The position numbers and the translations under genes are program-made. 64,000 nt of DNA from positions 1 through 64,000 of the forward strand of contig NW_003314434.1 in the NCBI RefSeq assembly GCF_000143415.4. Reading direction: 5' to 3'. Each line of letters opens with the position of its first letter. Positions within the stretch are counted from its first letter, which is position 1. The DNA comes from Selaginella moellendorffii. Its lineage: Eukaryota > Plantae > Lycopodiophyta. The notes under the pieces are model-generated. The model had not been told where the DNA came from. It ran no database searches and saw only the letters and a list, made by a program, of their open reading frames with translations. Shown here piece after piece: positions 25 through 36,115 of this stretch.

Positions 25-140
25 CTCCACAAATGCTTGACAGTCGTGTATCACGCATTGGGTGTCATGAGGCGCACAAGATCATTTGCATACTGGGATG
101 TGATCCAGCCATACAAATCCAATAGTGATCCACATTCTCG
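25..140 (-). pseudogene. Degenerate fragment of the last exon of the PDR/ABCG gene
   Basis: Colinear similarity to 36238..36380 (ctccacaaa..ttgac.gtcgtg..tgggatg.gatc..gccatac..atccaatagt). Confidence 0.8.
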
Positions 141-1613
141 GAAAGTCCAAGAAAAAGCAAAAAGCTGTTTATATCCAACTTAGGTTTGGTGGTCAACACT
201 AAACCAAAAACAATGAAGATGAATAGGACGATGTTATTGTCCCTGCCCTACAAGTATTTTTACGTGTTTTTGTTTGCAGCAGAGGAACTGCGGTACTGAA
301 TATCCACATTCTGGTATTGAAATTAAGCTGGTCACTTGAGTGATTAGTTTTTAGCTGATCAAAACGGTTTTAATGTACAATGTTTAAATTGTGATTTTCA
401 TTTGTGAATACTTTAGTGTTCTTAATTTGGATTTTCTTTACATTTCGCTTTATAGGTATAAAGAATATACCTAAATATCTAAGTATATTCTAGAATATTC
501 TCTAATCTAGCAACTTTAAAGTTTTCATATAAAAAACTATGAAGTTCTTTATTTTGCCTCATATCTAGAACTGGAAGAGTATCAAGTAAAATTTGAAAAA
601 CTATATAAAACTGAGAAACTCTATATTATCCTATAAATTACAAGGATTAACACTGACAAAGAGTCTAAAATTAACATCATTAATCTAGAGGGCACAAAAT
701 CCAACTTCTGGACGTGTTTTAAGATTGATGTCATGATGGTTAAACACTAAACAACTTAAAAGAGTTAAAGTTTGTTCTAGCTATTTGAAAACTTGCCTCA
801 ATCTAACCAAGCACCTAGCTTCATTATTTGTTATTCTTTGCATTCAAGTATGCAAAGAAATCAGTGGAATTTAACGATTGGTTCCTCAAGGTATGAAAAA
901 AACAAGAAACCTGGATCAATTCATATATATATATTTCTCTCTCTCTCCATTTGACTCTTCCTTTCTATAATTTTGCAGACTCGTCAAAAAAGGGGCTTTG
1001 AGGGGGCAAAAAGAAACTCATTCACCCTGTACCAACAGAACTTGCAGGGGTGAGCTTTTGAGTGTTCTGAAGCTACTCTCTTGTTTTGACTTCCAGGTTC
1101 CTTGGATTCAATTCAGAAAGGCCTGTAGGAAAACGTTTCCCTGTAAAAAGGTCAACAGGTCAAAGGTGCGAATATTCTCTCTACAAAAATCAACAATCCC
1201 GCCATTTTCTTCATCGCATCTCCTGAGAATTGGGATAGCTCTCCAGCTTCCACCCGATCTCTGCCCACTTGAGGTGAGATGCATGGACCCTACAAGAAGC
1301 CAGCCGTGGACACCACGCTGTTGCATCTCCCGTCAATGTGCTGTTTACCAATCGTGTTTCTTGAACCGAACCTGACTACAAGAATGTCGGAAGCCCTTGA
1401 GTTGTTCAGCAACCTTGATCGAGAACAACTCGGCCTGGCAGAAATGCAATGAACTGGCAACGAATTCATATTTCTGAATCGAAATCAGCATGCTGAAAAA
1501 GACCAAGACTACAAAGATGACAAAAAGGAGCAAGTAAATCTAAACAACTACAACGATCAGCTGCAAACAGACATGTTAGAAGCCAAGCAGAGAATCAGAG
1601 TAATGAAAGAAAC

Positions 1614-2829
1614 TCACCAAACAGATTGCCAGGCAGGATCGCAGAGGATGTCGCGCGCGGATGGACGCTGGTCGCGTCTTGCTGCGACCAGCTCCAACAC
1701 CTTGGGCGCAATTGATGGGTGTTGGTACGCCCAGTCTGCTGGTAAAACGCCATCCCGGACGTCAATCAATACCGACTCCCTTTCCTACACAGATTCACCG
1801 AACTAAGCAAGCACGTTGCACAAACTGCAGCCAAACCTGGTCCGGGGGACACCTCCAATGAAGTTCGAAGAGTATAACTCCAAGCGCAAGCATGTCAGTG
1901 TAGGTTGAGTTGCTCCGGCGCTGGGGAGAGTAGTAAACTGCTCTCCCCTTCTTGATATTTTCGGTCTCGAGCATGGACTCCTTATTTTTAGCTGTAAGCC
2001 AACAAATGAGAGATGGAAGAGATGTTTCATTTGCCTACCAAGACCGAAATCTCCCAGCTTGATGCGTCCATCGTCTGTGACGAAGATGTTGTGTGGTGCT
2101 ATATCCCGATGAACACCCACGTTGTCGTGCACATGCGCCACAGCTTGAAGAAGCTGCCTAAACGCATCTGCAGGTGGTGACTCACCGCCGAGGAGCACCG
2201 ACTGGAGCGAGCGGCCACAAAACTCCATGACAATGTACACTTTCGACTTGCCCGGCTCGCCTTCCTCCTTCCACATGTCGAAGTATTTGACTATGTTGGG
2301 GTGTTCGCAGCGCTGGAGCATCTCTCCCTCCTTGAAGACGAGCGCGACATCCTGGTCTCTGGACTTCGTTGCTGTGCGAACCTTGATGACTTTGATGGCG
2401 TAGATTTGTTCGTCCTCCTTGCTACGGCACTTGTATACTTTCCCGGACGCCCCCTGGCCAACACAAGCGAGCACTTCGTAGCTGCTGCAGAAGCGGCCTG
2501 GACAAGAGAGACAAGGGGCCACTCAGAAGCGAAAAGATGCCAAAGAGACAAATTATTGTATCCACCTGCTGCTGCAACTGGAGTCTCCCCTCCCTTTTGG
2601 ATCGATTCCACGATCCCGGTCACAACATTCGCCGAGAGCATCTTGAATCTCTCCAAGCGTTGCGCCATTGCGAGGAATTGCCGAACATATTCTGCAAGTC
2701 ATGAATCAAACCAGCAAAGAGTCGTGTCAGCCAACAAAAGGAATTCCTCGTACCAGCGTCAGGAGCAGCCTGCAACGCGGATGCATCATGATCAGTTTCT
2801 CCTGCTCCTGCTTCAACGAGGATCTTCAT
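1614..2829 (-). CDS. eIF2alpha-kinase (GCN2)-like protein kinase, kinase domain only, about 328 aa, 5 exons (2829-2754, 2691-2566, 2497-2039, 1991-1837, 1784-1614)
   Basis: Four phase-compatible GT-AG introns (62, 68, 47, 52 nt) give one open frame. Motifs: GRFCSSYEV, GQGASG, YAIK, KE..ML..CEHPNIVKY, YIVMEFC, HRDIAPHNIF, DFGLA, YYSPQ, DMLALGVILFEL, ERESVLIDVRDGVLPADW, RPSARDIL. The start codon is the least certain part. Confidence 0.8.
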
Positions 2830-3397
2830 CAGACAAGTGCAGATGTTTCAAGTTTTGACCAACCTGATCGAGCTCGGTTAATCGGATCCAGTGGGCGGGT
2901 CCTTTCGAGCATGACGTCGGATCGCTTCTGAGTGTGTAGTTTCTTCGGACCAGCAGCTCTCTTCCTCTCCATGGTGGACTCTGGTCAGTGTTAACATTGT
3001 GAGTCGTTGCTGAAAGCACAAAAGAGATTGAGGAGTCGTTACTGCACTTATCCAACGGCTGGAGCCTAGAATGCGCACATCAGCTGTCCGTCAATGGATT
3101 CACAACAAACTTGCTACAATTGCATGTTCACCTCCTTCCGCCTCGCCAACAGTAGGCCGCAAACCAGCAGCGCACTCACCTCTGCCCTTGCCAGACGATC
3201 ACGGCAGCCCTAGATTTGGAATCTAAGCTGCATTGAGGATCGACGCGCTCCTCCGGCTCCCTTGGGCTTTGCCAATAGTAGGGTACAAGAATACAAAAGG
3301 CCACGTCGGATAGAGTTTAGGGCAGACGTGGCACCTTTGGTCACCTTTTGTGGCCCTTCTTCATTTCCACGGAATACAAGTCATTTTTTAGGGTATC

Positions 3398-3985
3398 ATG
3401 AAGAAGACACTCATTCTCGATCTAGACAATACACTGGTATACGCTCATAAGGATCTCGTCTCTTCTGTAGATTTCAGCATGGAATTCGACGATGATGCAC
3501 CACTCCACATCATGAAGAGACCAGGCGTAGATGAATTTCTGGGGAAGGTTTCAAAAGTGTACAATATCGTGGTGTTTAGTGCCGCCCAGGAGAAGTATGT
3601 CAACCTTGTGGTTGACCATCTGGATCCTACTGGGGGGCTTGTGTCGAGGAGGCTACATGGTGGCAATTGCGTTGTTCTAAAGGACGGGACGAAAGTCAAG
3701 AATCTTGACCATGTAGGGTTTCGGGATTTCAAGCGGGTGGTGGCACTGGATGACATTATTGACTTCTACCAAGGTCATCAAGAGAGCGTGGTGGTGGCTC
3801 CAAAGTTTGAGGGGTCAAAGGATGACCACTTCTTGGCAGATGTAACCCCGTTCCTTCTTGCGCTGTCAAAGTGTGTGGATTTTACCAAAGTTACCCATCG
3901 CTGGAATATTGGACAATGTGTGGAGAAGCAAGGCAAATTGTACGTCCTAGATCCATTAGATGATGAATGGGTTGTTTTTAACTGA
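3398..3985 (+). CDS. Intronless SCP/CTD-small-phosphatase-like HAD phosphatase (FCP1/NIF domain), 195 aa
   Basis: LILDLDNTLV (DxDxT), KRPGVDEFL, VVFSA, YVNLVVDHLDP, VKNL, VVALDD; uninterrupted ORF. Confidence 0.85.
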   Translation: MKKTLILDLDNTLVYAHKDLVSSVDFSMEFDDDAPLHIMKRPGVDEFLGKVSKVYNIVVFSAAQEKYVNLVVDHLDPTGGLVSRRLHGGNCVVLKDGTKVKNLDHVGFRDFKRVVALDDIIDFYQGHQESVVVAPKFEGSKDDHFLADVTPFLLALSKCVDFTKVTHRWNIGQCVEKQGKLYVLDPLDDEWVVFN

Positions 3986-4395
3986 TTATTGTATTTTGTA
4001 ATAAATGTTATAATTTTTCTGCCAAAGTGTAGTTTATGCAAATGAATCTTAGTGAACTTTTGAGCTCAGGATTTCCTACATGTCTCATGTAAAACAAAAT
4101 GGCAAAACAAGAAAAACAGCACACCAAATTTTCAAGCTCTTTTGCCAAGGAAATCCCCTTTACATTGAGAGCCCACAGCTTTGCAACACCCCATGAACAC
4201 CAATAGGAGCACGTGCCCACCTCAAACAACAAGCGAGACTTCAAAAAGGACATCACTGATCCAACATTTGATGCCGGAGGATAAGATGCTTAGAAGACTG
4301 ATTGCTTCTGAGTTCTTTTATGTCTGTTGTTTAGTGCCTATGTGAAGCTATTGACAAAAATGTGATGATCCATATGAAGCTCTTCACAGGATCAT

Positions 4396-4398
<3 letters not shown>

Positions 4399-4470
<72 letters not shown>
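4399..4470. repeat. (GA)n microsatellite, about 36 units
   Basis: Read directly from the sequence. Confidence 0.98.
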
Positions 4471-4481: not shown

Positions 4482-5425
4482 ATGACATCCAGCGAAGTAG
4501 CAAGAGGAGTGATCGCGGTGCCTCCTGCAGGCATCTCCACGCCAAATCGCGACTCTTCTGCGCCAATGTGGTGATTCCAAGTCCCTCCCGCGAGGGAAGC
4601 TCTTGCACCGCCGCCTGGCCGCCACCCTCGACTTACGCCACCACCCCTTGTTCAGCAATCTCCTCATCCTCATGTATGGCAAGTGCTCCAGCCTCCCGGA
4701 CGCATGGTCCGTCTTCCACGATCTCGTCCACAAGAACGCCTTCTCCTGTAACATCATGATCTCGACGCTCTGCGCAAACGGCCAGAGCGCGCAAGCGATT
4801 CATCTCTTCCTCGCCCTCGCCAGCGATTCAGTCGTCCGCCCCACCCACGTCTCGTTCGTCGCCGCGCTCGCCGCCTGCGCCAATTGCCCCGATCTCCAGT
4901 CGGGCATCCGGATCCACGCCCAGATCATCGCCGCGCCACCCGCGATCGCGAGCAATCCAGTCGTGTGCTGCGCCCTCTTAACCATGTATGGGAAATGCGG
5001 CAGCCTGGCAGACGCGCGGAAGGTCTTTGATGACATGCCGCGCAAGACGATAGTCGCCTGGAGCGCGATGCTGGCTGCTTGCACCAGAAATCCCGATCAG
5101 GGCGGGCTCCCCGCTGCGATCGAGCTCTATCGCCAGCTCCGGGATGCCGGCATCGGCGCGGACTGGAACACTGCGATTGCCGCAAATGCCCATAATGGGC
5201 AGTTTAGAGCGGCGATTGCGCTGCTGTGGAAGTTGGATCTGGAAGGGATTGGGCCTGATATGGTGACGCTGACTGAGATCCTGGCAGCGTGTTCTTGGAA
5301 GCAGGATAAAGCACAGGGTATAAAGATCCACGGAGCGTACTTGCTCGTGTGGCTGGGAGCGTAATGTTGTCGCTGGAACCTCTATCGTCAACATGTATGG
5401 AAAGTGTGGCAGAATCAAGGAAGCA
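4482..5425 (+). pseudogene. PLS-type PPR pseudogene (chimeric, frameshifted, truncated)
   Basis: LLILMYGKCSSLPDA and ALLTMYGKCGSLADARKVFD motifs; frameshifts near 4550 and 5335. Segment 5161..5420 is an inverted homolog of about 31650..31910. Confidence 0.85.
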
Positions 5426-5763: not shown

Positions 5764-8700
5764 TGTGAGGTCAAGTGTATAACTACAATAATGTATACTA
5801 ATATTAGCATAGTGGGATTTTGGTAGCCATCAGATTAGTTTCAATATAAACTAAAGTTTTTGGGATAATTGATATGCATATTTTATGTATTCTCTTTCTA
5901 TATTCCATACACTCATATTATTTTATATTCCATGTAATTTCAATTTGAACCACTTGCTTTTGTATATAAACTAGAGTTTTTGGGATAATTGATATACACA
6001 TTTTATGTATTCCCTATCCATATTCCATGCACTCACATTATTTTATATTCCATGCACTCACATTGGTGGAGGTGAGGGGCACGTTTGATTATTCTTGAAA
6101 AGTGCTTGGATTTGGGATTTTGGTTTAGATTTAACTTTTGCATTATCTAAATTTAGCTCTTTCCATTTCTTTCTTTTATTCTTTCCTTTTGGGATTTTGG
6201 TTTAGATCTAGCTTTTGCATTATCTATATCTCCCTTTCCTTCTAACTTTTTTTAATTTTATTTCTTTTGCTCTTTCTTTTTCATTCATCTTTATGGTAGA
6301 GTAGTAATCTCTTCCTCCTTTGACTTTGGAGCACAATTGTTTGATGCTATGTGATTGTAGTTGAATAATCAAACTCAGTTGATGGCAGTATTCATAACAC
6401 ATAGTACAACTCTTATTGCTCTTGGTGCCAATCCTCATGTTCAACTAAAGTTCTTTTATGGGAATCCTTAGGGACAATGTGTACTATTGGTTCAATCACT
6501 TCATAGTGATTGCCATATATCATTCTTGGGATGATACTCGATGTTTGTATGAGTTTCCCACGTGTTTTCAAGGGATGGCACTGTAGTGGTATAATGTTTT
6601 GAATGTAGCTATTTGTGGGGATTAGAGTATTCTTCGAAACGTCTTCAAACACACATTTGGATATGCTGACAATTGTGATGATACTTTCTAACAATTGCAT
6701 CGTCTTTGTTAAGGACCATCTAAGTTGGTGATGCAATTTAGCATTTGTTTTCGTAGCCTTTTGCTTCATGCGGAGCCAAATATGTTAGAGTGGATCAAAC
6801 TAGGAATGTTGTGGCCAACACTTCGTCAAAGTTTTGTAGGACTTGTGCATGCACTTGCTCGAACAACCTCTAACAATGCTTTTTGTTTGGCACAACATTA
6901 TGAGACATTGCCTTTTCCACTTCTCGCTACACATCTTTTAGCTCCACTTTCTGTGGGATATGGTTTTGTTTCAATGGAGGTTGATGTTACTGCTGCTTAG
7001 GTTTAAGGACAAGGGTGAGGATGTGGTCATAGTTGTGATATTCGCTACTGAGCATGTAATGAAGTTATTCACACTTATCAGTATTGTCAGCGTTTTCCGG
7101 ATTGGTAGCTTCCATTTCTTGGGTAGAGACCTTGGCATCAATAATGTCCTGTTTGTATTGTTGTAGTGAAAGGTCTAGACATCGAGATGCATCCAGGAAA
7201 TGAGGAGTCGTGCAAGTAATGGAGGGACCTTGCACGAATAAGTCAATGACCCCTCCATCTTTCTTTTGGAAGTATCATCAAAAGGTTCATTTGGCATTAG
7301 TTCATCCAGTGTTTACTTTCCAAGCTTATTTTTATAACAAAAGGTCTTTTATTATTCTCTTTGTATTGATTCATACATGTTCAAGTTTATCTTCTATTGC
7401 TCGACTTGTTGCCATATGTTACCACCTATATTTGTGTCATGCAGCAGAGTCAGTTTTCATTCTTTATGGCAACGGCCATACATATGCATATGCACGGGAT
7501 GAAATGAACTTAGTTGTGTATATAGGTGATCTTGAACTTGGATTGCAATCATTGCCAGTGGTGCCGAGTTAAGCTTTTGACCTCATCCTTGGTATGGGCG
7601 CAATCATGCTAAATGTGACTTTGAGGCTTCTTCCCCTTGTCTCATACTTCTTTATATTTTATCCATTCCTTTCACTTCGAAACATGTTTATCCCTTTGCT
7701 TCTACTTCTACTTTCATTACTTTTGTCTCCCCATTATTTCCTTTTATGTTTCCGTTTGTTTCTGCTTTTCCCTTTTTCAATCCCTTAGTTGACAAGCTCA
7801 TGAAGGAGTATGCCAATCTCTTTGAGTTTCACCTATTGTCTGGGGCCAAAATTGCTATATGTCATCTGATTCCAACCAGGGATACTCATCCCATCAAAGT
7901 TTCTGTTCATCATCAATCACCCAAAAAGATCAAGATTTTACATGCAAATGTCAAAGAGATGTTGGAAAAGGGTGTTATTCAAAAGTCATAGAGTCCTTGG
8001 GCATATGAACCTCATCTTGTGACGAAGCCTAATGCGAGTATTCATTTCTACATCGATTATCATTCGTTAAACAAAATGACGATTTTATATGTATATCCTC
8101 TTCCTCACCTGTTGATTTCTTAGATCATCTAAAAAGAAGTTGTTAGTTCACTAAGTTAGATCTTGCTTCTAGGTAATGGCAAATACTAATGGGTACTGGC
8201 AAATACTAATGGACGAAGAAGATATTCCTAAGAATACTTTTTATACACCATTTAGTTTGTATGAGGTTTTGGTGATTCTATTTGGTTTGAACAATGCTTT
8301 AGCATTTTTCCAACAAATGATGGATGGGGTTTTTTGTGATATGCTAAAGGTGATTAATTACTTCATTAGTGATGTTTTGATCCACTCGAAGGGGATGTGG
8401 GAGGAATATATGTTTGTAAAGTGTTAAATCAATTATGGGAAGTTAGTTCAAAGTTGAAGTGGTCGAAGTGTGTATTTGACTCTAATGACACGACTTATCT
8501 TGAGTACCGTATTTTTCGTGAGGGTTTGCAAGTTGATCCTGACAAGCTTGTGGGTGTTTTAATGTTCCCTATTCCAAAGTGTGTAAATGATATGTAGTGC
8601 TTCTTAGGTAAAGTGTAGTATCTCAGTTATTTTGGGGATCATCTTTTTTATCACATTGCATTTTTGCAAGTGCTGTCGAAGTCATCAACATCATCTTTCA

Positions 8701-10654
8701 TCTAGTCTGTGGATTGTGAGTAGACATTCATGGATTTCAAAAAGCTATTGACGACTCTTCTGGTTTTGGCGTATCCTAACTACACTCAACCTTTCATTTT
8801 GCACATAAATGCTTCTGATATTGGTCTTGGAGGTGTATTGATGCAAAAGAGCCTGAGTGTGTCTGGTTAGCGCCATCCCATTGCATATATAAGCCGTATA
8901 TTACAACTAACAGAAGAAAACTACTTCACGACAGAGAAAGAATATTTAGTAACAATCTGGGGTTTTGAAAAACTTCATCCATATCTACATGGTTCTTGGA
9001 CATTACTGGAAGGTGATTATGCTACCATTACTTCATTATTGAAATGAAAAAACTTGATTGGTCATATTGCTCGGTGGGCTTTGAAGCTTTAGATATATAA
9101 TTTTAATAATGTTCATCACCCAGGGAGTTCTATGGCTGATGCTAATGCCTTTTCTCGAGCTCCTCTTCCTTATTTGCCATTTTTTCATGTTTCTAACGAG
9201 TGTGTTGTTTTAGCATCTGTGGATTTTCTAGACAAGGATTCTGTGTTGTTAGCAGTTGTTGTATTTAATATTCAATGTCCACAAGGTGTAAAACAGAATT
9301 TACCTTCTCTTGATGAGGTTTGTGAAGCTCAAAAGATTGAGTCATGGATTTGGAGGCTTCGTAATGGGTTTAAAAATTTTACATCACTTGCTGATGACTT
9401 GCCATTCCAGCATTTATTTTTTTAATATTACTTTGGAAACAACCTTCTTTATTTTATGGGTACAAATCCTTATGATCATTTATAGTTGGTAGTGCCTTCA
9501 ATCTTTATTTCATGGTTCCTCCATGCCTACCATGATTCTCCTATTCTAGGCGGGCATATGGGACATCGTCATGTGACCAAAAAGCTATGTAAATCTTTTT
9601 ATTAGCAAGAGATGCAACGTGATTTTATTCAGTATGTGTATAGTTGTGTTTGGAGCTAAGCTCATAATACTACCCCTTGTGCTACAAAAGGATAGTTGGA
9701 GTCAATTGTAGTTTCCCATCCTTTTGAGTTGGTGGCATTTGATCTTATGGGACTTTTACCATGATTGACTGCTCGTAATGAGTATGTTATTATTACTTTT
9801 GACTACTTAACTTGTTGGGTGGAAGTTGGTGCTCTTCCTAGCGCCTCTGTAACTACTGTTGGATACTTCCTCCTCAATCAAGTGGTGTTCCAACCTTTTT
9901 TTCTGGAGCGAATTTTTTCGGATAATGGTCCCATATTTATCACTGAGGCATTTTATGTTTTGACGTCTTAGTTAGGGATACGCCATACGTTCACGAGTGC
10001 TTATCATCCACAGTCAGACGATTTGATAGAACAGCTCATTAGTATTTGATGGGAATTCTTCCACTTATCCAAGTAGAGTTTGCAAAAATCTAGGCCACAT
10101 ACAAGTGGGTCAACAATAGCACTACAACACCCATCATTATCCATCTACGGAGTATAAAGTGGATGAATTAGTGTTAGTTTTTTTTCCCCATCTTATGGTA
10201 TGTGGTTTATCTAAGGGGTTCTTTGTTCAGTAGAAAGGACCATATCATGTGTTGCAACAAGTTGGATCATAAGTTTATGAGGTTTAGCATGATGTCAAAC
10301 AAGTTAATCCTCCAGAAATTGTGCATGTATAGCGGTTGAAACGCTTTGTACAAAGGGATCAGGAACATCTGGTACCATTTATAGATCCACCAATTTCTCC
10401 TCCTAATTTTCTTCTAGATCCTTGCCCATCTACGAGGGAACTCTAATGGTCTTCCATTATTTCGAGAGAAGGGGATGATGTGAGGTCCAAGTGTATAGCT
10501 ATGATGCCATATATTAATATTGGTGTAGTTGGATTTTAGCAGCTGTCAGATTGGTTTCAATCTGGACCACTCGCTCCTATATATAAGTTAAGGTTTTTGG
10601 GCTAATTGATATGCATATTTTTTATATTCCCTTTTCATATTCCATGCACTCACA
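5764..10654 (+). mobile_element. Decayed full-length Ty3/gypsy LTR retrotransposon
   Basis: TG..CA LTRs at 5764-6062 (internally duplicated) and 10479-10654. PBS TGGTGGAGGTG (tRNA-Ala-like) at about 6064 and PPT gagagaaggggatga before 10479. Domains in order: gag SMEVD (about 6975), protease LIHTCSS (about 7365), RT YWQILMDEEDIPK..FGLNNA, RNase H ADANAFSR, integrase SDNGPIF and SAYHPQSD. Many stops; no matching TSD seen. Confidence 0.85.
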
Positions 10655-11384
10655 CACAAATAATTATTCCTTTAATTACAGACTTATTATTTTTCTCCTT
10701 TTTTATGATCATCTTTTAAAGTGCTATCTATAACACCTAAAATATATGTAAATAATAATATTATATAAAAAATTAAAAATAAATTACCTACTTTTTTCAT
10801 CATCTTCATCATCATATGAGATTATATCATTCAAGGTAGCATGTTTATCACCTTAAAATTATAAGTAATAACAATATATGTATAATTATTTATTATTAGC
10901 TATATATATATTAATCTTTCTCTCTAATAAGTTATTAATTATTTTTGTTTTATTTCTAATCTAGATGTAATATAATATAAATAAGGAAGTATACAGTAAC
11001 TTAAAAATTAATGTTGCTTACATCATTATTTATTATATAGTTAGCAATATATTAATAATATTAAATTATATTTCTCTAAATTATAAATAAATTATATGAA
11101 AATATGTCTCTGATATATTATTTTTTAATTATAGTTAATCACTTGGATCCCTTGGAAATGATGAACTTGAAAAGATTACACAATAGCTAGTGCAAAATTA
11201 GTGTTATAATCTTGTAGTAGAGTAACTAATAGAGCAACAATAGTATGCATAGCAGTTTTAGTTTACTTTAGAAAATATAGTGTAAAGCATATACCTAAAA
11301 TATTTAATATATAATAAAATATTCCTTATTCTAAGGGTTATAATTTCTTGCTGTTAAACTTTTCTATAATTCATTTTTATCAAG

Positions 11385-11655
11385 TGGAGCTAGTGGAGTA
11401 TTTATATCCTCGGGCTAGACCATTAATATGTTGAAACAATGCTTTAGCTTTGTTTTACATGTTTGTTTTAATGTATGGATATTAAAATTTTTAAGACTAT
11501 TTTAGTGTTCCTGTTTCATCACTCCTTAGTTGCATATTCAAGAGTTGTTCCATACTTTTATTTCTTTGTTCATTAGACATATGCTTAGGAGTTTGATTCT
11601 ATCATTTTGTTTAGTGGCCTAAGGCCCTAAAACTTAGGTGTTGCCCTTAGCACAC
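11385..11655 (+). repeat. Dispersed AT-rich repeat (probable solo LTR); related copies at about 12150..12503 (+) and 16340..16770 (-)
   Basis: Shared gtttagtggcc(t)aaggccctaaaacttaggtg...ttagcaca end and agctagtggagta motif; reverse complement at about 16365. Confidence 0.55.
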
Positions 11656-12509
11656 ATATCTCAAAAGTTAGGTCTATTCCATTGCTATCCTATAGTAATT
11701 AAAATGTGAAAATCATGATTTTGTCTTAAGCATATGCTAGAAGATAAAGATGATTTTATCTTGAAGCATATGCTAAAAGATAACCATGCAAAGTAAAAGA
11801 GGATCCATGACAATCAAAAGGTGGTAATATACCCATACAAGCAATAACTTGATAGATATAAAGGAATTCAAAGTGCTCAACCACATGTTGTGTGGCATCA
11901 GAATTAATAATAAGAGTAAAAAACAACTAATAGTTAATAAAGCACCAGTAACATGAGTATGATTGTGTTGAAAATCCTTAGTTAAAAATAAAATAGGAGA
12001 AGATGAGTCATCAATAGTAGTATATGTCTATCGTTGTTATCTATTAGAACTAGTAGCAATATAAGCTTCAGGGACTTGCCATGGATGAGGAATAACATGA
12101 GAAGTTGAATAAGTATTATTTAGACGTTGACAAAAAAATTAGGAAATATGGCCAAAACGATTTTAAATATATAGTAGGGATGGGCGTGGTTGACCAACTT
12201 GAAACATCATCTAACTTCTTATTAGGCATGTTTATTTTTGTTTTATGTTTGGCTTAAGTTTAAGCCCAAACTTTGTACTATATTAGCTGGTGGAATATCT
12301 TTATGTTAGGCCACCATTATGCTAAAATAGTCCTTTAGCTCCATTTTATGTGATAGTTTTGATATTGGAATGCTAAAAGCTCTATTCCTTATTCCTTATT
12401 TGTTCTTATTCCTTTGTTCATTAGCTTTATATATACTCAATCATCCCTTTGTTTAGTGGCCAAGGCCCTAAAACTTAGGTGCCACTCTATTGCCATTAGC
12501 ACATATATA

Positions 12510-13010
12510 TATAAGCTTTTAAATTTGGATTTCTCATAATGTCACTAACCCCAATACTATTTAAACTTAAGGACAATATTTTAAAACCCTTAACTGATTA
12601 AAAAAAGGGGTGCACTTTTATTTATCCCTTTATATTTGAACTCTATAGATCAATGTCTCAAATCATTCCCTTTGGTTTTTTATAATTCATTATGTTTCTC
12701 TATACAGTTGCAACTCTTTTAACACTATACAAGTCAAGCCCAATAGGAATAAATTAGACTTGCCAAATGTTAATCTTAACACATGGTATGATTCCTCTAG
12801 CTAACTAAACGTCAAACCCAAGACCCTTTTAATACCAAATGTAAGCTCCTAAATTTAAATTTTTTGGGAGGTCACCCAATTTAGTTTATTCAAACCCAAG
12901 AACATTTAACCCTAAGTATTCCAAGACCTCTAACTGATTAGAAAAAAGGTTGCACTTTTATTTATAGGCCTTTCCCCTTATATTTGAACCTCATATATCA
13001 TCTCTCGAAT
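12510..13010 (-). mobile_element. Cassandra-like TRIM: two related LTRs with 5S rRNA-like domain around a short internal region
   Basis: LTRs at about 12510-12782 and 12840-13010. Degenerate tRNA-iMet PBS (ttttaatacca + aa + tgt) at 12827-12842. gggaggtcaccca...cccaagaacatttaac at 12866-12910 resembles the reverse complement of the 5S internal promoter region. Confidence 0.7.
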
Positions 13011-13184
13011 CAATTAGAAACTAACACACGAATCAATTAGAAACTAACTTGAGACCTTCAATCCCCAAGAAGGTTCATGCAAGTGGTCATGAGTAAGGAT
13101 AAACTTGATATTACTAGAATACTCCAAGTTGTGAGAAAATAGATGTGCCTTGGTGATAAGCTGGAATACAATAGAGAAGTGCTA

Positions 13185-15415
13185 ACTTTCCCCCTTAACT
13201 ACTCTTACATGGTGGCAACTGCCATTTCTTCACGAGTCATGACTGTCAATTACAGAGCTTTACACTTTCTTTAGAAAGCTAGTCATTGATGTATTGTGTT
13301 TCCACGCATACTGTCCTTTAAAAGGACATATCTTTAGAGTTAGGATTTTGCTCTTTGCAATGGAGTGTCAAGTTTGAGTCCCTGTGGTAACTTTCTTGAG
13401 TTTTTTCTTTGTTGGTGTGGTAGTGTTGGAGAAGCTTGCTTTGTGTTGGTGTTTGGCAAGTTTATTGATGAGTCTTAAAAGATTCTTTAGTCTCTAAGTC
13501 TTGTTTTTTGTTAAAGTTCTTCAAGTTGTTATTTTTCTTCATGTTGTTTTCTTGAGCTTGATTTTTCTTGGATTTTTGAATTTAAGCTTTATGTTTTTTG
13601 ATTGTGTTAAGTTTTTGAGCTTGAACTTTGTAAATCTTAAATATGTTGAAATCTTGAGTTTGAGTTTTCATAGTCTTGATCTCTTGATCTTCATGCCTGT
13701 AGTTCTTCTTGATGTTTCGTTCTCGATCTTTAAAATTGAAAACCTTCATTTCTTTCAATGTCGTTTTTGATGATGTTTGAGTCGTATGATTAATATTTCT
13801 TGAGCTTGTTAAGGTTGACAGTTTGGAGATGCTCGCCATCGAATGTTACAATTGTTGCCATTCCTAGAGCTTTAAATTTTTGGATGAGGAATGGTCCTTC
13901 CCATCTTGAATTCACTCTCAAGCCAATTTTTCCAATATTTCTTAAGTGTCTTGTTTGTCAACTCTGCTTAACTGTTGCCTTGAGGGTAATATGGTGTTAA
14001 AGCCTTATGTTTGAGGATGTTCTTAAGTGTCTTGTTTGTCAACTCTGCTTAACTGTTGCCTTGAGGGTAATATGGTGTTAAAACCTTATGTTTGTTTCAC
14101 TTGAAGCTTGTTATGAGTAGTCTAACAAAGTCGAGTTCCTATCATTGAAATAGTTCTAGTGGTGTTGTTGGATGAAGCTCTTGAGTTTGTTTCTTTAGTG
14201 TGTACTTGGTTTGTTGACAAATGTCACATTCTCAACAAAATTTTGCTAAGTTATGCCAAAGTGTTAGCCACTAGAGTCCTACTTGCAAAATCTTGTGAGC
14301 TGTGATTTCTTTTGTGAAGTGGCCTCTTGCTTGTCCACAGTGGGCTTCTTCGAATAGATCTTGAGTTCTTCAAATTGTACACATCTTCATAGTACATTGT
14401 CTCGTCCTTTTTTGTACAATCTTCCTCCCACAACTGAATATGGTCTTGTCCTTAAGACAAATTATTTATGGTGATTAGAGATGGAGTATCGATTTAGTAT
14501 TATTGTTGTTATGAGGTAGTAGTAGATGTCATTCGTCCATGTTGATGATGTGTGGATGCAAAGTATGTTGGAGTCAGGAAAGTCATCCATGTTGTATTTT
14601 AGTTGTTCACTAGTTATAAGGTTGGCTTATACATGTTCTTTGCCAGGTTTGTGAATAATTTCGAAGTTGTATTCTTGAAGTAATAAAAACTATCAAGCAA
14701 TTCTACGGATGAAGATGGTCTTGTTGAGGAGGTGTAAAAGTGCTTTGTGGTCAACCATGCTCTTGACTTTAGTGCCGAGTAGGTAGTGTCGAAACTTTTA
14801 TAATGCATAGACCATTCCTAAAACTTCTTTTTCAATGGTGATGTAGTTCATCTCAGCTGAGTTGAGTCTTCGGCTCGTATAGTAGATTGGTCGGTCTTTG
14901 AGGTCTTGTTGTGAGAAAGTATTGCTCTGATGGCATAATTAGAGGCAACGATGTGTATTGAAATCTTTGTCCTAGTTTGGTTGAGCGAGTATTGGAGCCC
15001 TTGTTAAGGAATTCTTGAGCATGTCAAATGCTTGTTGGCAATCTTGAGTCCAGTTGTAGACGTGATTTTTCTTCAAAAGATCTATAAGGGGTTTTGCAAT
15101 CTTCACATAATCTTTGATGAAGCGTTGATGGTATCTCATTTTGCCGAGGAAGGATCGTAGTCTAGTGGTGTTTGTTGGGTGTTGCATATTGATGATGGCA
15201 AAAGTCTTAGCTTTGTCAATGAGGATGCCTTTTTTGCAGATGATGTGCCCAAATAGGATGCCAGATTTGACGAAGAAGGTAGATTTGTCAGGGTTTAAGG
15301 TGATGTTGTTCTCTTGACATTTGATGAAGCATTTCTCAAGATGTTGGGGATGTTATTTTTTGCTGCTAAAGATGCTGAAGTCATCCATAAAAACTCACAT
15401 GAAGTTGGTGAGGTA
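13185..15415 (-). mobile_element. Decayed, truncated Ty3/gypsy pol fragment (RT, RNase H, integrase C-terminus, PPT)
   Basis: VFMDDFSIF (about 15395), LRSFLG..Y..RFIKDY..IAKPL..LLKK (14972-15187), RNase H remnants, WEGPF (about 13900), minus-strand purine tract at about 13190. Confidence 0.8.
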
Positions 15416-15558
15416 ATATAGTGCTTTCAATCTGTATTCTACTCTTTCTTCACGCTTACCATGACTCTTCTATTCTAAACAAGTATATTGTACATTATCA
15501 TGTGACTAAGAAGCTACACATGTCTTTTTATTAGTCAAAGATGTGATATGATATTATT

Positions 15559-15561
<3 letters not shown>

Positions 15562-15609
<48 letters not shown>
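15562..15609. repeat. (AT)n microsatellite
   Basis: Read directly from the sequence. Confidence 0.95.
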
Positions 15610-15610
<1 letters not shown>

Positions 15611-15619
15611 CTATGTTTA

Positions 15620-17832: not shown

Positions 17833-18537
17833 GATTTTCTTTTTATTTTTATTTACAGAGTAAAGTCATATACCTAGATATCTAAATATATTCTTGGATA
17901 TTCTCTAATCTAAGGGCTCTTAAACTTTCTCTAATTAACTTGTAATCAGTGTTTACAGTTAATTGTCTAACTTATCACTAATCTAAATAATCTATATTGA
18001 AAAACTATTAACACTTATTAACACTAACATGTAACAGAATGCCAATTTAAACCTTAAAAATAAATTTAAAATTAACATCATTAAGCCCTCCACACTCATG
18101 GTTTCATTCTGTAATATAGAGGGCACAAAATCCAGCCGTCTAAGATTGATGGCCTGATGGTTAAACACAAAAGAACTTAAGAGAGTTAAACATTGTTCTA
18201 GCTATTTAAAAACTAAAGACTAGTGGGGACACCATTTCTCACCATTTGTCCTGAAGTGCAATAGCTAACAATTAACATTATGCAAATGCCTCAATCTAAA
18301 CAAGTGCCTAGCCTCATTAGTTGTTATGTTTAGCATTCAAGTATGTTAAGAAATATATTAGAATATACATTGTGATATATTTTAGATAGCACAAAAAATA
18401 ATTTAAAAAGAGGAGTAGTGTATTTTAAATAGTACAACAAATTATTTAAAAAGAGTAGTACTCAATGGAATTTAAGGATTGGTTCCTCGAGGTATGGAAG
18501 AAACTAGAAACCTAGACAGATAAAATTGATGGATCAA

Positions 18538-18580
<43 letters not shown>

Positions 18581-18830: not shown

Positions 18831-18884
18831 TTTGAATAAGTTTTTCTACATTTCCATGGAATACGAGTCATTGTTTAGGGTATC

Positions 18885-19380
18885 ATGAAGAAAACACTCA
18901 TTCTTGATCTAGACAATCCACTGGTATACGCTCATAAGGATCTCGTCTCTTCTGTAGATTTCAGCATGGAATTTGACGATGATGCACCACTCCACATCAT
19001 GAAGAGATTAGGTGTAGATGAATTTTTGGGGAAGGTTTCAAATGTGTACGATATTGTGGTGTTTAGTGCCGCCCAGGAGAAGTATGTCAACCTTGTGGTT
19101 GACCATCTGGATCCTACTCGGAGGCTTGTGTAGAGGAGGCTACATGGTGGCAATTGTGTTGTTCTAAAGGACGGGATGAAAGTCAAGAATCTTGACCATG
19201 TAGGGTTTTGGGATTTCAAGCGGGACTTCTTGGCAGATGTAGCCCCTTTCCTTCTTGCCCTGCCAAAGTGTGTGGACTTTACCGAAGTTACCCATCCCTG
19301 GAATATTGGACAATGTGGAGAAGCAAGGCAAATTGTACGTCCCAGATCCATTCGATGATGAATGGGTTGTGTTTAACTGA
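18885..19380 (+). pseudogene. SCP/CTD phosphatase pseudogene copy
   Basis: Homolog of 3398..3985 with DLDNP, an in-frame TAG at 19131 and an internal deletion. Confidence 0.9.
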
Positions 19381-19519: not shown

Positions 19520-19825
19520 TTCAAAAGTGTATCATCCTAGTAATGAGCTCACAACTTTTGCTTGACCGAGCCTGAAAGAGATTGGTAAAAAAGAGCTACC
19601 TCCTGGTACTTGATATATTAGGCAAACATGAAGGCAAAGAAGACCGGGAAGCCGACCAAGACACCCGCGACAACACCCAAATGTCATGTCGTAGCCAAAG
19701 TAACTCTCCACAAACGCCTTGACAGTCATGTATCACGCATTGGGTGTCATGAGGCGCACAAGATCATTTGCATACTGGGATGCGATCCAGCCATACAAAT
19801 CCAATAGTGATCCACATTCTCGGAA
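19520..19825 (-). pseudogene. Degenerate PDR last-exon and 3' UTR copy
   Basis: [13 protein letters not shown] in ORF 19532..19729 matches the PDR C-terminus at 36116..36427. Confidence 0.85.
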
Positions 19826-21295
19826 AGTCCAAGAAAAAGCAAAAAGCTGTTTATATCCAACTTAGGTTTGGTGGTCAACACTAAACCAAAAACAATGAAG
19901 ATGAATAGGACGATGTTATTGTCCCTGCCCTACAAGTATTTTTACGTGTTTTCGTTTGCAGCAGAGGAACCGCGGTACTGAATATCCACATTCTGGTATT
20001 GAAATTAAGCTGGTCACTTGAGCGATTAGTTTTTAGCTGATCAAAACGGTTGTAATGTACAATGTTTAAATCCTGATTTTCATTTGTGAATACTTTAGTG
20101 TTCTTAATTTGGATTTTCTTTACATTTCGCTTTATAGATATAAAGAATATACCTAAATATCTAAGTATATTCTAGAATATTCTCTAATCTAGCAACTTTA
20201 AAGTTTTCATATAAAAAACTATGAAGTTCTTTATTTTGCCTCATATCTAGAACTGGAAGAGTATCAAGTAAAATTTGAAAAACTATATAAAACTGAGAAA
20301 CTCTATATTATCCTATAAATTACAAGGATTAACACTGACAAAGAGTCTAAAATTAACATCATTAATCTAGAGGGCACAAAATCCAACTTCTGGACGTGTT
20401 TTAAGATTGATGTCATGATGGTTAAACACTAAACAACTTAAAAGAGTTAAAGTTTGTTCTAGCTATTTGAAAACTTGCCTCAATCTAACCAAGCACCTAG
20501 CTTCATTATTTGTTATTCTTTGCATTCAAGTATGCAAAGAAATCAGTGGAATTTAACGATTGGTTCCTCAAGGTATGAAAAAAACAAGAAACCTGGATCA
20601 ATTCATATATATATATTTCTCTCTCTCTCCATTTGACTCTTCCTTTCTATAATTTTGCAGACTCGTCAAAAAAGGGGCTTTGAGGGGGCAAAAAGAAACT
20701 CATTCACCCTGTACCAACAGAACTTGCAGGGGTGAGCTTTTGAGTGTTCTGAAGCTACTCTCTTGTTTTGACTTCCAGGTTCCTTGGATTCAATTCAGAA
20801 AGGCCTGTAGGAAAACGTTTCCCTGTAAAAAGGTCGACAGGTCAAAGGTGCGAATATTCTCTCTACAAAAATCAACAATCCCGCCATTTTCTTCATCGCA
20901 TCTCCCGAGAATTGGGATAGCTCTCCAGCTTCCACTCGATCTCTGCCCACTATAGGTGAGATGCATGGACCCTACAAGAAGCCAGCCGTGGACACCACGC
21001 TGTTGCATCTCCCGTCAATGTGCTGTTTACCAATCCTGTTCCTTGAACCGAACCTGACTACAAGAATGTCGGAAGCCCTTGAGTTGTTCAGCAACCTTGA
21101 TCGAGAACAACTCGGCCTGGCAGAAATGCAATGAACTGGCAACGAATTCATATTTCTGAATCGAAATCAGCATGCTGAAAAAGACCAAGACTACAAAGAT
21201 GACAAAAAGGAGCAAGTAAATCTAAACAACTACAACGATCAGCTGCAAACAGACATGTTAGAAGCCAAGCAGAGAATCAGAGTAATGAAAGAAAC

Positions 21296-22511
21296 TCACC
21301 AAACAGATTGCCAGGCAGGATCGCAGAGGATGTCGCGCGCGGATGGACGCTGGTCGCGTCTTGCTGCGACCAGCTCCAACACCTTGGGCGCAATTGATGG
21401 GTGTTGGTACGCCCAGTCTGCTGGTAAAACGCCATCCCGGACGTCAATCAATACCGACTCCCTTTCCTACACAGATTCACCGAACTAAGCAAGCACGTTG
21501 CACAAACTGCAGCCAAACCTGGTCCGGGGGACACCTCCAATGAAGTTCGAAGAGTATAACTCCAAGCGCAAGCATGTCAGTGTAGGTTGAGTTGCTCCGG
21601 CGCTGGGGAGAGTAGTAAACTGCTCTCCCCTTCTTGATATTTTCGGTCTCGAGCATGGACTCCTTATTTTTAGCTGTAAGCCAACAAATGAGAGATGGAA
21701 GAGATGTTTCATTTGCCTACCAAGACCGAAATCTCCCAGCTTGATGCGTCCATCGTCTGTGACGAAGATGTTGTGTGGTGCTATATCCCGATGAACACCC
21801 ACGTTGTCGTGCACATGCGCCACAGCTTGAAGAAGCTGCCTAAACGCATCTGCAGGTGGTGACTCACCGCCGAGGAGCACCGACTGGAGCGAGCGGCCAC
21901 AAAACTCCATGACAATGTACACTTTCGACTTGCCCGGCTCGCCTTCCTCCTTCCACATGTCGAAGTATTTGACTATGTTGGGGTGTTCGCAGCGCTGGAG
22001 CATCTCTCCCTCCTTGAAGACGAGCGCGACATCCTGGTCTCTGGACTTCGTTGCTGTGCGAACCTTGATGACTTTGATGGCGTAGATTTGTTCGTCCTCC
22101 TTGCTACGGCACTTGTATACTTTCCCGGACGCCCCCTGGCCAACACAAGCGAGCACTTCGTAGCTGCTGCAGAAGCGGCCTGGACAAGAGAGACAAGGGG
22201 CCACTCAGAAGCGAAAAGATGCCAAAGAGACAAATTATTGTATCCACCTGCTGCTGCAACTGGAGTCTCCCCTCCCTTTTGGATCGATTCCACGATCCCG
22301 GTCACAACATTCGCCGAGAGCATCTTGAATCTCTCCAAGCGTTGCGCCATTGCGAGGAATTGCCGAACATATTCTGCAAGTCATGAATCAAACCAGCAAA
22401 GAGTCGTGTCAGCCAACAAAAGGAATTCCTCGTACCAGCGTCAGGAGCAGCCTGCAACGCGGATGCATCATGATCAGTTTCTCCTGCTCCTGCTTCAACG
22501 AGGATCTTCAT
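21296..22511 (-). CDS. Second copy of the eIF2alpha-kinase-like gene (apparently intact)
   Basis: ORF-track translations are identical to copy A, and the same splice sites occur at +19682. Confidence 0.78.
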
Positions 22512-23079
22512 CAGACAAGTGCAGATGTTTCAAGTTTTGACCAACCTGATCGAGCTCGGTTAATCGGATCCAGTGGGCGGGTCCTTTCGAGCATGACGTC
22601 GGATCGCTTCTGAGTGTGTAGTTTCTTCGGACCAGCAGCTCTCTTCCTCTCCATGGTGGACTCTGGTCAGTGTTAACATTGTGAGTCGTTGCTGAAAGCA
22701 CAAAAGAGATTGAGGAGTCGTTACTGCACTTATCCAACGGCTGGAGCCTAGAATGCGCACATCAGCTGTCCGTCAATGGATTCACAACAAACTTGCTACA
22801 ATTGCATGTTCACCTCCTTCCGCCTCGCCAACAGTAGGCCGCAAACCAGCAGCGCACTCACCTCTGCCCTTGCCAGACGATCACGGCAGCCCTAGATTTG
22901 GAATCTAAGCTGCATTGAGGATCGACGTGCTCCTCCGGCTCCCTTGGGCTTTGCCAATAGTAGGGTACAAGAATACAAAAGGCCACGTCGGATAGAGTTT
23001 AGGGCAGACGTGGCACCTTTGGTCACCTTTTGTGGCCCTTCTTCATTTCCACGGAATACGAGTCATTTTTTAGGGTATC

Positions 23080-23669
23080 ATGAAGAAGACACTCATTCTC
23101 GATCTAGACAATACACTGGTATACGCTCATAAGGATCTCGTCTCTTCTGTAGATTTCAGCATGGAATTCAACGATGATGCACCACTCCACATCATGAAGA
23201 GACCAGGCGTAGATGAATTTCTGGGGAAGGTTTCAAAAGTGTACGATATCGTAGTGCCGCCCAGGAGAAGTATGTCAACCTTGTGGTTGACCATCTGGAT
23301 CCTACTGGGGGGCTTGTGTCGAGGAGGCTACATGGTGGCAATTGCGTTGTTCTAAAGGACGGGACGAAAGTCAAGAATCTTGACCATGTAGGGTTTCGGG
23401 ATTTCAAGCGGGTGGTGGCACTGGATGACATTATTGACTTCTACCAAGGTCATCAAGAGAGCGTGGTGGTGGCTCCAAAGTTTGAGGGGTCAAAGGATGA
23501 CCACTTCTTGGCAGATGTAACCCCGTTCCTTCTTGCGCTGTCAAAGTGTGTGGATTTTACCAAAGTTACCCATCGCTGGAATATTGGACAATGTGTGGAG
23601 AAGCAAGGCAAATTGTACGTCCTAGATCCATTCGATGATGAATGGGTTGTTTTTAACTGTATTTTGTAA
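23080..23669 (+). pseudogene. SCP/CTD phosphatase copy with frameshift
   Basis: A 7-nt deletion (ggtgttt) near 23252 splits the ORF into 23080..23355 and 23283..23669. Confidence 0.88.
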
Positions 23670-23809
23670 TAAATGTTATAATTTTCTGCCAAAGTGTAAT
23701 TTATGCAAATGAATCTTAGTGAACTTTTGAGCTCAGGATTTCCTACATGTCTCATGTAAAACAAAATGGCAAAACAAGAAAAACAGCACACCAAATTTTC
23801 AAGCTCAAA

Positions 23810-34029: not shown

Positions 34030-34760
34030 ATCAGAGTAACCAAAGAAACTCACCAAACAGATTGGAATAACAATTCGGCTGCATCAACGCGGGTAAGCAT
34101 CGACAGGCTTAGAAGCATTACTTGCTTCACAAGAATGGTTGATGAGATGAGCAATGCTGCCCGCTCGAGTGGCGTCCACGACTCGCTCATTGTCGATACA
34201 AAACAGGTATGTACCAGCGCCCTGTCAGCAACTCTTGAGTGCTCTTGAGTGGATTGGTGGACTATTACACTTCTCACGTACGTCCGCAACAGTAGGCCGG
34301 ATGATCTCTCCTGCGTATTCTATAACCTGCACAATGGCATGGAGTTATCACTGGACAAGCATGTCAGGATCGCAGAGGATGTCGTGCGCGGATGGACGCT
34401 AGTCGCGTCTTGCTGCGACCAGCTCCAACACCTTGGACGCAATTGATGGGTGTTAGTACGCCCAGTCGCTGGTAGAATGCCATCGTCAATCAACACCGAC
34501 CCCCTTTCCTACACAGATTCACCAAACTAAGCAAGCACGTTGCACAAACTGCAGTCAAACCTGGTCCGCGGGACACCTCCAATGAAGTTCGAAGAGTATA
34601 AGTCCAAGCGCGAGCATGTCAGTGGAGGTCGAGTTGCTCCGGCGCTGGGGAGAGGAGTAAACTGCTCTCCCCTTCTTGGTATTTTCGGTCGCGAGCATGG
34701 ACTCCTTATTTTTAGCTGTAAGCCAACAAGTGAGAGATGGAAGAGATTTTTCGAGCATGA
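34030..34760 (-). pseudogene. Third, decayed kinase copy (C-lobe only)
   Basis: AKNKESML..DMLALGLILFELHW retained; N-lobe deleted; indels and a stop in the last exon; carries about 300 bp absent from copies A and B. Confidence 0.85.
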
Positions 34761-35234
34761 CGTTTGAGTTGAGTGTGTAGTTTCTTTGGACCAGCAGCTC
34801 TCTTCATGGACTGTGGTCAATTTTGTGTCGTGCTGAAAGCACAAAAGAGATTGAGGAGTCGTTACCGCACTTATCCAACAACGCCTGGAAAGCGCACAAC
34901 AATTGATGGATTCACAACAAAATTGCCACAATTGCATGCTCATCTCTTTCTCCGCATACCAGCAGTTGTTCAAAGTGAGCAAACACAAATCCTGCCAATG
35001 AGCCAATCCTGTTAATCCTACTGCGAATTCAATCGACATGCATTTGGGAATCCTCACCTCCACCCTTGCCCTGGGCAATAGTACCCTGAGCACAACAGAA
35101 TTGAGAATTCCTGCGAGGAAGAAACGTAGGATGAGCCATGTTCTTGATTGAAATGAAGCTGATTGGGAGAGCGCACTCACCTCAGCCCTTGCCAAACGAC
35201 CACAGCAGCTAAAAAGTCGCCTTTACAGAATGCA

Positions 35235-35921
35235 TCACTCATTCTCGATCTAGACAATACACTGGTATACGCTCATAAGGATCTCGTCTCTTCTGTAGAT
35301 TTCAGCATGGAATTCAACAATGATGCACCACTTCGTTGCTAGAGGCCGGTGAGTACGCTCGAACTTCTACATACTTAATTTTTCCTGTATATAAACTAGG
35401 GTTTATGGGCTAATCTATGCAAGCACATTAATAAAGATGCTCGAAGAGCTTCCACATCATAGACCAGGCGTAGATGAATTTCTGGGGAAGGTTTCAAAAG
35501 TATACGATCGTGGTGTTTAGTGCCGCCGAGGAGAAGTATGTCAACCTTATGGTTTGACCATCTGGATCCTACTGGGAGGCTTGTGTCGAGGAGGCTACAT
35601 GGTGCCAATTGCGTTGTTCTAAAGGACGGGACGAAAGTCAAGAATCTTGACCATGCAGGGTTTGGGGATTTCAAGCGGGTGGTGGCACTGGATGACATTA
35701 TTGACTTCTACCAAGGTCATCAAGAGAGCGTGGTGGTGGCTCCAAAGTTTGAGGGGTCAAAGGATGACCACTTCTTGGCAGATGTAACCCCTTTCCTCCT
35801 TGCCCTGTCAAAGTGTTCGGATTTTACCAAAGGTACCCATCGCTGGAATATTGGACAATGTGTGGAGAAGCAAGGCAAATTGTACGTCCCAGACCAATTC
35901 GATGATGAATGGGTTGTGTAA
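35235..35921 (+). pseudogene. SCP/CTD phosphatase pseudogene adjacent to the intact PDR 3' end
   Basis: ILDLDNTLV retained; insertion at about 35335-35445; frameshifts; C-terminal ORF 35520..35921. Confidence 0.88.
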
Positions 35922-36115
35922 AATTGATTTGCTAAAGTCTGTAATAAATAATTATAAAATTTTCAAGTATTTAAATAATAAATTTAAAGCCTGAAAACTC
36001 GAAGAAAATCTCAAGCTTTGTTGATCTTTTATACATATGTTACAAAAGTGAATCATCCTAGTAATGAGCTCACAAACTTTTGCTTGGCTGAGCCCAAAGC
36101 TCTGGAAAAGAAGAG

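Follow-up and report, generated by a model that had tools for sequence, protein, structure and literature searches.

A linked eIF2alpha-kinase-like and SCP-type phosphatase gene pair amplified in the lycophyte Selaginella moellendorffii

When a kinase gene and a phosphatase gene lie head to head and have been copied together, does their pairing reflect a shared function, or only the fact that they were neighbours when the DNA was duplicated? This question is raised by a 64,000-nucleotide stretch of the Selaginella moellendorffii genome (contig NW_003314434.1, positions 1 to 64,000; hereafter the window), in which a kinase gene with introns on the minus strand stands head to head with an intronless NIF/SCP phosphatase gene on the plus strand, their start codons less than 1 kb apart (copy A; Table 1). 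An earlier note, made from the letters alone, had read the locus as a GCN2-like kinase gene diverging from a DxDxT SCP-type phosphatase gene, and had suggested a co-regulated writer/eraser pair or a toxin/antidote-like pair. The divergent arrangement itself was borne out by Pfam and by the gene model. Here, we describe a second locus at which relatives of both genes adjoin one another. Judging from these sequence comparisons, the linkage of the kinase and the phosphatase is old, and a functional coupling between them is plausible. Our overall picture, to which we would give about an even chance, is that of an anciently linked, Selaginella-specific kinase-phosphatase pair, derived from one ancestral unit and coupled in trans.

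A second linked locus on GL377674.1

At copy A, Pfam assigned a protein kinase domain (7.7e-36) to the main exon open reading frame (ORF; 1803-2522, minus strand), which corresponds to the N-terminal 150 positions of the domain, and a NIF domain (2.4e-36) to the phosphatase ORF, covering profile positions 1-159 of 160 and including the motif DLDNT. As first read from the minus strand, the kinase model had GT-AG introns of 62, 68, 47, and 52 bp; an upstream exon and a tiny last intron were then added after the NCBI model. Of the 358 residues of the resulting spliced product, all but 2 agree with P0006, a protein annotated in S. moellendorffii as "eIF2-alpha kinase-like isoform X1". P0006 (356/358 identical) was used as a stand-in for the window's spliced product in the kinase searches and in folding, and the main exon was also searched. 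With the NCBI-type kinase start at 2972, the two start codons are 425 bp apart; the distance of 568 bp given by the earlier note presupposes a kinase start at the ATG at 2829. Neither gene is new to the S. moellendorffii annotation: the window proteins are 97-98% identical to annotated proteins (the phosphatase of copy A is 98% identical to P0001), and in the assembly GCA_000143415.2 there are scaffolds that match the window DNA at 97-99% identity. Three public scaffolds, GL377769, GL377821, and GL377730, also carry the head-to-head pair (with a 426-bp gap on GL377730); at 99% identity, these are best read as copies or haplotypes of the window pair, and they are not independent evidence.

A search of 1.8 billion representative proteins with the kinase returned a sole non-self match that aligned as a single stretch, the S. 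moellendorffii protein P0063/P0209. In P0209 (635 aa), the kinase is fused to an N-terminal Fumble (pantothenate-kinase-like) domain, and identity to the window kinase is 39% over 306 aa, the region ahead of the kinase domain included. The P0209 gene lies on scaffold GL377674.1, 642 bp downstream of the gene for a NIF phosphatase, P0211 (213 aa), on one strand, and P0211 is 37% identical to the window phosphatase. This unit of NIF and Fumble-kinase genes occurs twice on GL377674.1 (L006/L007/L008, at about 520-554 kb) with a period of 12,886 bp, and a third copy of the fusion kinase is found at the scaffold end. Apart from the pair, the two loci have no neighbours in common (PPR, oxygenase, and ABC transporter genes in the window; VMP1, an LRR gene, and unknowns on GL377674.1). 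The two pairs are therefore alike in their kinase subfamily, marked by the catalytic-loop motif HRDIAPxN, in having a NIF neighbour, and in being locally duplicated units; they are unlike in that the GL377674.1 pair is in tandem, in the Fumble domain and the activation-loop GT that P0209 has, and in the low identity of the phosphatases. Both known HRDIAPxN kinase lineages adjoin a phosphatase of one Selaginella clade.

The pairing thus recurs at an unlinked locus, although the divergent arrangement does not. Because the second pair is in tandem (phosphatase, then kinase), a shared bidirectional promoter is not the conserved feature. For the suggestion of a co-regulated writer/eraser pair, this means that the second old linked locus speaks in its favor; against it stand the lack of conserved promoter sharing, the decay of phosphatase copies, and the solo paralogues of the phosphatase.

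The phosphatase has human SCP1 (3.4e-20) and CTDNEP1 (3e-16) as its best solved relatives in the PDB. With a full NIF domain and DxDxT, as in SCP1/CTDSP1 and other FCP/SCP (NIF) phosphatases, the copy A protein is predicted, by family, to be a minimal SCP/NIF-type phosphoserine/threonine phosphatase. It differs from SCP1/CTDSP1 in belonging to a clade that, within the databases searched, occurs in S. moellendorffii only, with the best outside matches at ≤40% identity. Four lineages make up this clade, namely the window copies, P0004 (53-55% identical to them), P0211, and P0268 (75% identical to P0211 and used in place of P0212), and they formed one clade in a reduced tree with a support of 85 in the Shimodaira-Hasegawa-like approximate likelihood ratio test (SH-aLRT). 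The C-terminal tail of the window phosphatase is common to P0004 only. Over the long term, the phosphatase family has been constrained (omega of 0.14 at a dS of 1.16 between P0211 and P0268). Beyond Selaginella, a NIF cluster in Asimina triloba had no related kinase adjoining it, the nearby kinase being a lectin receptor kinase.

Since the kinases and the phosphatases of the two loci have diverged to a similar extent (39% and 37% identity, respectively) and the NIF lineages group together, we propose that a single ancestral kinase-phosphatase neighbour pair was duplicated as a unit. A small inversion of the phosphatase gene alone would turn one of the two locus arrangements into the other. The phosphatase would most likely work in trans against the kinase, with either the kinase itself or its substrates as the target, and one intact phosphatase copy could then serve a whole array, which would not be a cis-locked toxin/antidote cassette. 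An analogy may be drawn with bacterial pairs of the PknB-PstP type, in which a Ser/Thr kinase and a PP2C-type phosphatase are encoded in one operon: the likeness would lie in two enzymes of opposing action whose genes adjoin and are passed on together. However, the bacterial pairs have PP2C phosphatases in true operons, whereas the window has two separate eukaryotic genes and a HAD-type phosphatase.

Uneven decay of the amplified copies

Self-BLAST and alignments within the window revealed four copies, A to D, all in direct orientation (Table 1). Two of the three kinase copies are intact, compared with one of four phosphatase copies, and only copy A is an intact pair within the window. The statement that the two genes recur together at 21296-23669 and 34030-35921 is hence true as sequence similarity, but not as a recurrence of the intact pair. 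In copy B, an intact kinase gene does stand beside a frameshifted phosphatase gene, as had been noted from the letters; the frameshifting 7-bp deletion corresponds to positions 3570-3576 of copy A. In copy C, the equivalent of positions 2028-2903 of copy A is deleted, which removes all kinase exons up to the DFG motif. The phosphatase previously seen alone at 18885 is indeed without a kinase, and proved to be a pseudogene in which DLDNP replaces DLDNT (copy D). Two further observations concern the phosphatase of copy C: its 115-bp insertion (35346-35460) is intron-like, starting with GTGAGT and ending with AG, and its counterpart in an older assembly is annotated as a 211-aa protein, P0003.

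Table 1. Coordinates of the amplified kinase and phosphatase genes in the window
Feature	Position	Strand	State and basis
Duplication unit, copy A	25..4139		Self-BLAST against 19706-23806, 99.05% identity over 4116 bp; left end may lie beyond the window start
Zero-difference tract, A vs B, 1,886 bp	1360..3245 (vs 21042-22927)		Spans the entire kinase gene and runs into the intergenic region
Kinase gene, copy A	1557..2972	-	Intact, 358 aa; Pfam Pkinase, GT-AG introns, comparison with P0006
Kinase exons, copy A	2972-2864, 2810-2754, 2691-2566, 2497-2039, 1991-1837, 1784-1618, 1560-1557	-	Spliced translation
Region separating the start codons, 425 bp	2973..3397		Sequence and start-codon placement
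Phosphatase gene, copy A	3398..3985	+	Intronless, intact, 195 aa, DLDNT; Pfam NIF
Phosphatase, copy D	18885..19380	+	Lone pseudogene; DLDNP, in-frame stop, 90-bp and 2-bp deletions; 94.6% identity to A (aligned bases)
Duplication unit, copy B	19706..23806		Self-BLAST, 99.05% identical to A
Kinase gene, copy B	21239..22654	-	Intact, DNA identical to A; offset 19682 from A
Phosphatase, copy B	23080..23657	+	Pseudogene; 7-bp deletion after 23251 giving a frameshift, second 7-bp deletion over the stop codon
Copy C	about 32257-35964	direct	79-93% identical to A
Kinase remnant, copy C	34320..34758	-	Last two coding exons left, the final one frameshifted
Phosphatase, copy C	35226..35921	+	Pseudogene without in-frame ATG; 115-bp insertion, -2 and +1 indels; 93.3% identity to A

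To the pattern of breaks can be added the substitutions among young copies, for which the window copies A and B were combined with the public scaffold copies L001, L002, and L009 (99.3% identical). The kinase coding sequence had accumulated 3 changes in 1077 bp, against 9 changes in 764 bp of introns and intergenic sequence (Fisher p=0.035). In the phosphatase coding sequence, 10 events were counted in 588 bp, which differs from the kinase (p=0.0026) and not from the non-coding sequence (p=0.49); 3 of the phosphatase changes were synonymous and 7 non-synonymous, giving a ratio of non-synonymous to synonymous rates (dN/dS) of about 0.67. Among the young copies, the kinase coding sequence is therefore constrained, with two intact, identical copies retained, and the rate of change in the phosphatase copies is that of non-coding sequence. 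The substitution counts, although small, agree with the pattern of breaks, and together they indicate that the kinase is being maintained while extra phosphatase copies drift.

These results bear most directly on the main rival of the coupled pair, namely that the two genes are ordinary, functionally unrelated neighbours, a chance head-to-head pair of a gene-dense genome in a block that underwent one ancient duplication and repeated recent ones, with the kinase kept and the phosphatase dispensable. We regard this as a substantial possibility, short of an even one. Several findings favor it and weigh against our overall picture: (i) three of the four phosphatase copies are broken, the young copies change as fast as non-coding DNA (on the small counts just given), and the intact kinase of copy B adjoins a dead phosphatase; (ii) no kinase gene adjoins the solo paralogues P0004 (with an asparaginase gene and a RING-like gene as neighbours) and P0268 (which lies by APG6 and Bet v 1), and each kinase-linked phosphatase has a closer relative among these solo paralogues (55% and 75% identity) than at the other locus; (iii) the orientation of the pair differs between the loci, being tandem on GL377674.1 and head to head in the window; (iv) adjacency at two loci could be an inherited chance neighbourhood, as genes <1 kb apart are rarely split; and (v) the reduced NIF tree carries a long-branch warning with moderate support, and in a full tree made by a quick method the deep branches were unresolved. 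The 328-aa gene beside P0004 (L004) was considered as a cryptic kinase and rejected, as it gave weak, sub-threshold RING-finger matches only.

On the other side, unrelated neighbours would not be expected at both known HRDIAPxN lineages, which adjoin a NIF phosphatase at loci that are otherwise non-syntenic, and the adjacency has outlasted an inversion as well as a domain gained or lost. The loss of phosphatase copies also tells less against coupling than it might seem to, since a phosphatase that acts in trans would be needed in no more than one intact copy per array.

Copies A and B share a tract without a single difference (Table 1). Their flanks carry 27 difference events in 2,229 bp (about 1.2%), at which rate about 23 should fall in the clean tract, and the Poisson probability calculated from these difference counts is about 1e-10. 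Because no differences are present where about 23 are expected, recent gene conversion has probably homogenised the two copies here. The 99% identity and this 1.9-kb tract could also be taken to mean that A and B are an assembly artefact, that is, one locus or two haplotypes assembled twice, the more so as the older public assembly spreads the pair over several small scaffolds. This is the least probable of the explanations considered: a single contig contains both copies, 19.7 kb apart, and they differ in their flanks and in indels peculiar to each; the older copies C and D show that real duplication has occurred repeatedly.

An eIF2alpha-kinase-like enzyme with an altered catalytic loop

By sequence, the best solved relatives of P0006 in the PDB are HRI (1e-29), PERK (6.5e-28), and GCN2 (2.6e-26), with NEK1 close behind (3.6e-26). 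A Foldseek search with the AlphaFold model of P0006 gave PERK, GCN2, or PKR as all of the top 42 or so matches, followed by MYT1 and CaMKII; the model has a mean predicted local distance difference test score (pLDDT) of 79, with most of the kinase core at >85 and an activation-loop segment (about residues 253-280) much lower. The domain is thus nearest to the eIF2alpha kinases (the PEK family: GCN2, PERK, HRI, and PKR) in both sequence and fold, as assessed through P0006. The label "eIF2alpha-kinase-like" appears justified for the window kinase on these grounds, but the more specific "GCN2-like" of the earlier note does not. The likeness extends to the C-lobe, where "..ER..vL.dvRdG.lP" aligns with helix alphaG of PERK and HRI, and to the name that NCBI gives the protein ("eIF2-alpha kinase-like"). 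Unlike the family's known members, the window kinase is a protein of 358 aa without a sensor domain, and its sequence margin over NEK1 is small. Pfam found the kinase domain alone in P0006 (residues 104-350), ahead of which the model shows a disordered segment (1-50) and two short helices. An ESM Atlas search returned generic kinase clusters only, and the two short C-terminal kinase exons, searched singly against solved structures, gave nothing significant, being too short.

Several residues that such kinases normally require are changed. The catalytic loop reads HRDIAPHN in place of the canonical HRDLKPxN and so has alanine for the lysine; GR takes the place of GT in the activation loop, and SPQ that of SPE. 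In helix alphaG, CPPDQER of the window kinase aligns with FSTQMER of PERK, which puts proline at the position of PKR Thr487, and arginine stands where PKR has Thr451. In a deep mutational scan of PKR, Gly450, Thr451, and Thr487 were among the few highly constrained positions (PMC11556786). The paralogue P0209 reads HRDIAPKN, keeps the activation-loop GT, and likewise has proline at the Thr487 position. Because three normally conserved or PKR-constrained residues are missing, a role of the window kinase in translation shutoff is doubtful, as is its status as an eIF2alpha kinase; the protein probably no longer acts as a canonical one.

The altered loop does not for that reason look like the mark of a dying gene. 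Among 333 HRD-type motifs from about 200 collected kinases, 313 have the lysine, and HRDIAPxN occurs in Selaginella proteins only. As the motif has this distribution and a paralogue of 39% identity has HRDIAPKN, the change from lysine to alanine is, by this comparison, not decay. The layout of HRDIAPHN and HRDIAPKN (alanine at the lysine position and a basic residue or histidine two positions on) recalls the HRDLAARN loop of tyrosine kinases, and by that analogy the altered loop may mean a changed substrate chemistry rather than a dead enzyme.

These residues also bear on the proposal of an eIF2alpha-phosphorylating translation-shutoff toxin with a neighbouring phosphatase antidote. The kinase's nearest relatives by sequence and fold, the tight linkage, and the co-amplification of the two genes speak for such a system. 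However, the catalytic-loop lysine is missing, the Thr451 and Thr487 equivalents are arginine and proline, and the phosphatase is under relaxed constraint. SCP-type enzymes, moreover, are not known to be eIF2alpha phosphatases. Kinase copy B adjoins a broken phosphatase, so that not every functional toxin copy would have its functional antidote, although an antidote could be supplied in trans from copy A. The toxin/antidote reading thus found no support, and we consider it extremely improbable.

Origin of the array and meaning of the linkage

The ends of the copies show how the array was formed. Fragments of the 3' end of a PDR-type ABC transporter gene follow copies D (19522-19797) and B (23806-24105) and match 36043-36330 beside the full gene, and the start of the unit recurs past the end of copy B (36-139 matches 24002-24105). 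Since the junctions of these direct, multi-gene repeats carry pieces of the neighbouring ABC transporter gene, the array arose by local tandem duplication of a unit made up of the kinase, the phosphatase, and the 3' end of the transporter gene. The full PDR/ABCG-type gene, whose 3' end marks the junctions, extends from 35952 to about 42000 on the minus strand and is convergent with the phosphatase of copy C.

An alternative account of the amplification is that the cassette was carried by a mobile element or by a giant-virus-like sequence that had integrated into the genome. Amplification at both loci, the apparent restriction of both families to S. moellendorffii in the databases searched, and the short repeated elements and AT-rich repeats that flank the units would all fit such an origin. 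In contrast, self-BLAST of the window found no terminal repeats bounding the unit, the unit boundaries carry host ABC transporter fragments, as in a tandem duplication, and the kinase introns are tiny, as is typical of Selaginella. A viral origin was dropped, as viral contigs in IMG/VR gave weak, partial NIF matches only (24-35% identity), and we hold the mobile or viral account as a whole to be very unlikely.

The surroundings of the cassette comprise PPR genes, a 2OG-Fe(II) oxygenase gene, and the PDR-type ABC transporter gene, together with a variety of repeats. A (GA)n/(TC)n microsatellite is situated close downstream of the phosphatase of copy A (4394-4470). A sequence of about 116 bp occurs five times in both orientations at 94-97% identity (1033-1148, 18671-18786, 20715-20830, 27834-27949, and 33479-33612) and may be a small repeat resembling a miniature inverted-repeat transposable element (MITE). 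There is also a 1.9-kb direct repeat of 95% identity (16915-18831 vs 26099-27993), and between cassette copies runs a long AT-rich stretch (6000-18000; 28-37% GC) with further repeats; these sequences between the copies are probably decayed transposable elements. An inverted repeat of 96-97% identity (5158-5425 vs 31647-31913) lies within PPR genes (4603-5364, plus strand; 31227-32108, minus strand), a piece of a PPR gene having been duplicated in inverted orientation inside one cluster. Farther on, a single 799-aa ORF (59674-62073, plus strand) encodes a long and apparently intact PPR protein (Pfam PPR 8e-127).

What the linkage may mean can be set against what is recorded for this kinase family. 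A PEK_PEK subfamily already figures in plant kinome classifications, and our literature searches found no paper on this kinase-phosphatase pairing. As far as we are aware, GCN2 is the only characterised eIF2alpha kinase of flowering plants, and we know of no dedicated eIF2alpha phosphatase there. If a stand-alone relative of the eIF2alpha kinases has been retained next to a phosphatase, the two would readily suggest themselves as a new phospho-switch, an idea tempered by the loss from the kinase of residues that such kinases need and by the decay of phosphatase copies in the array. A bolder version, which we put forward tentatively and think rather unlikely, is that the HRDIAPxN kinases are a Selaginella-specific offshoot of the eIF2alpha kinases whose catalytic loop has been rebuilt and which has been kept with a dedicated SCP-type phosphatase through ancient duplication, inversion, and domain fusion. 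If this were true, the two genes would be writer and eraser of one module, and in one of its branches a pantothenate-kinase-like domain would serve as the sensor. Independently of such a role, the locus provides a clean example of uneven decay in an amplified two-gene unit, and, as one of two old loci in a single lycophyte, offers a case in which lasting kinase-phosphatase linkage can be tested.

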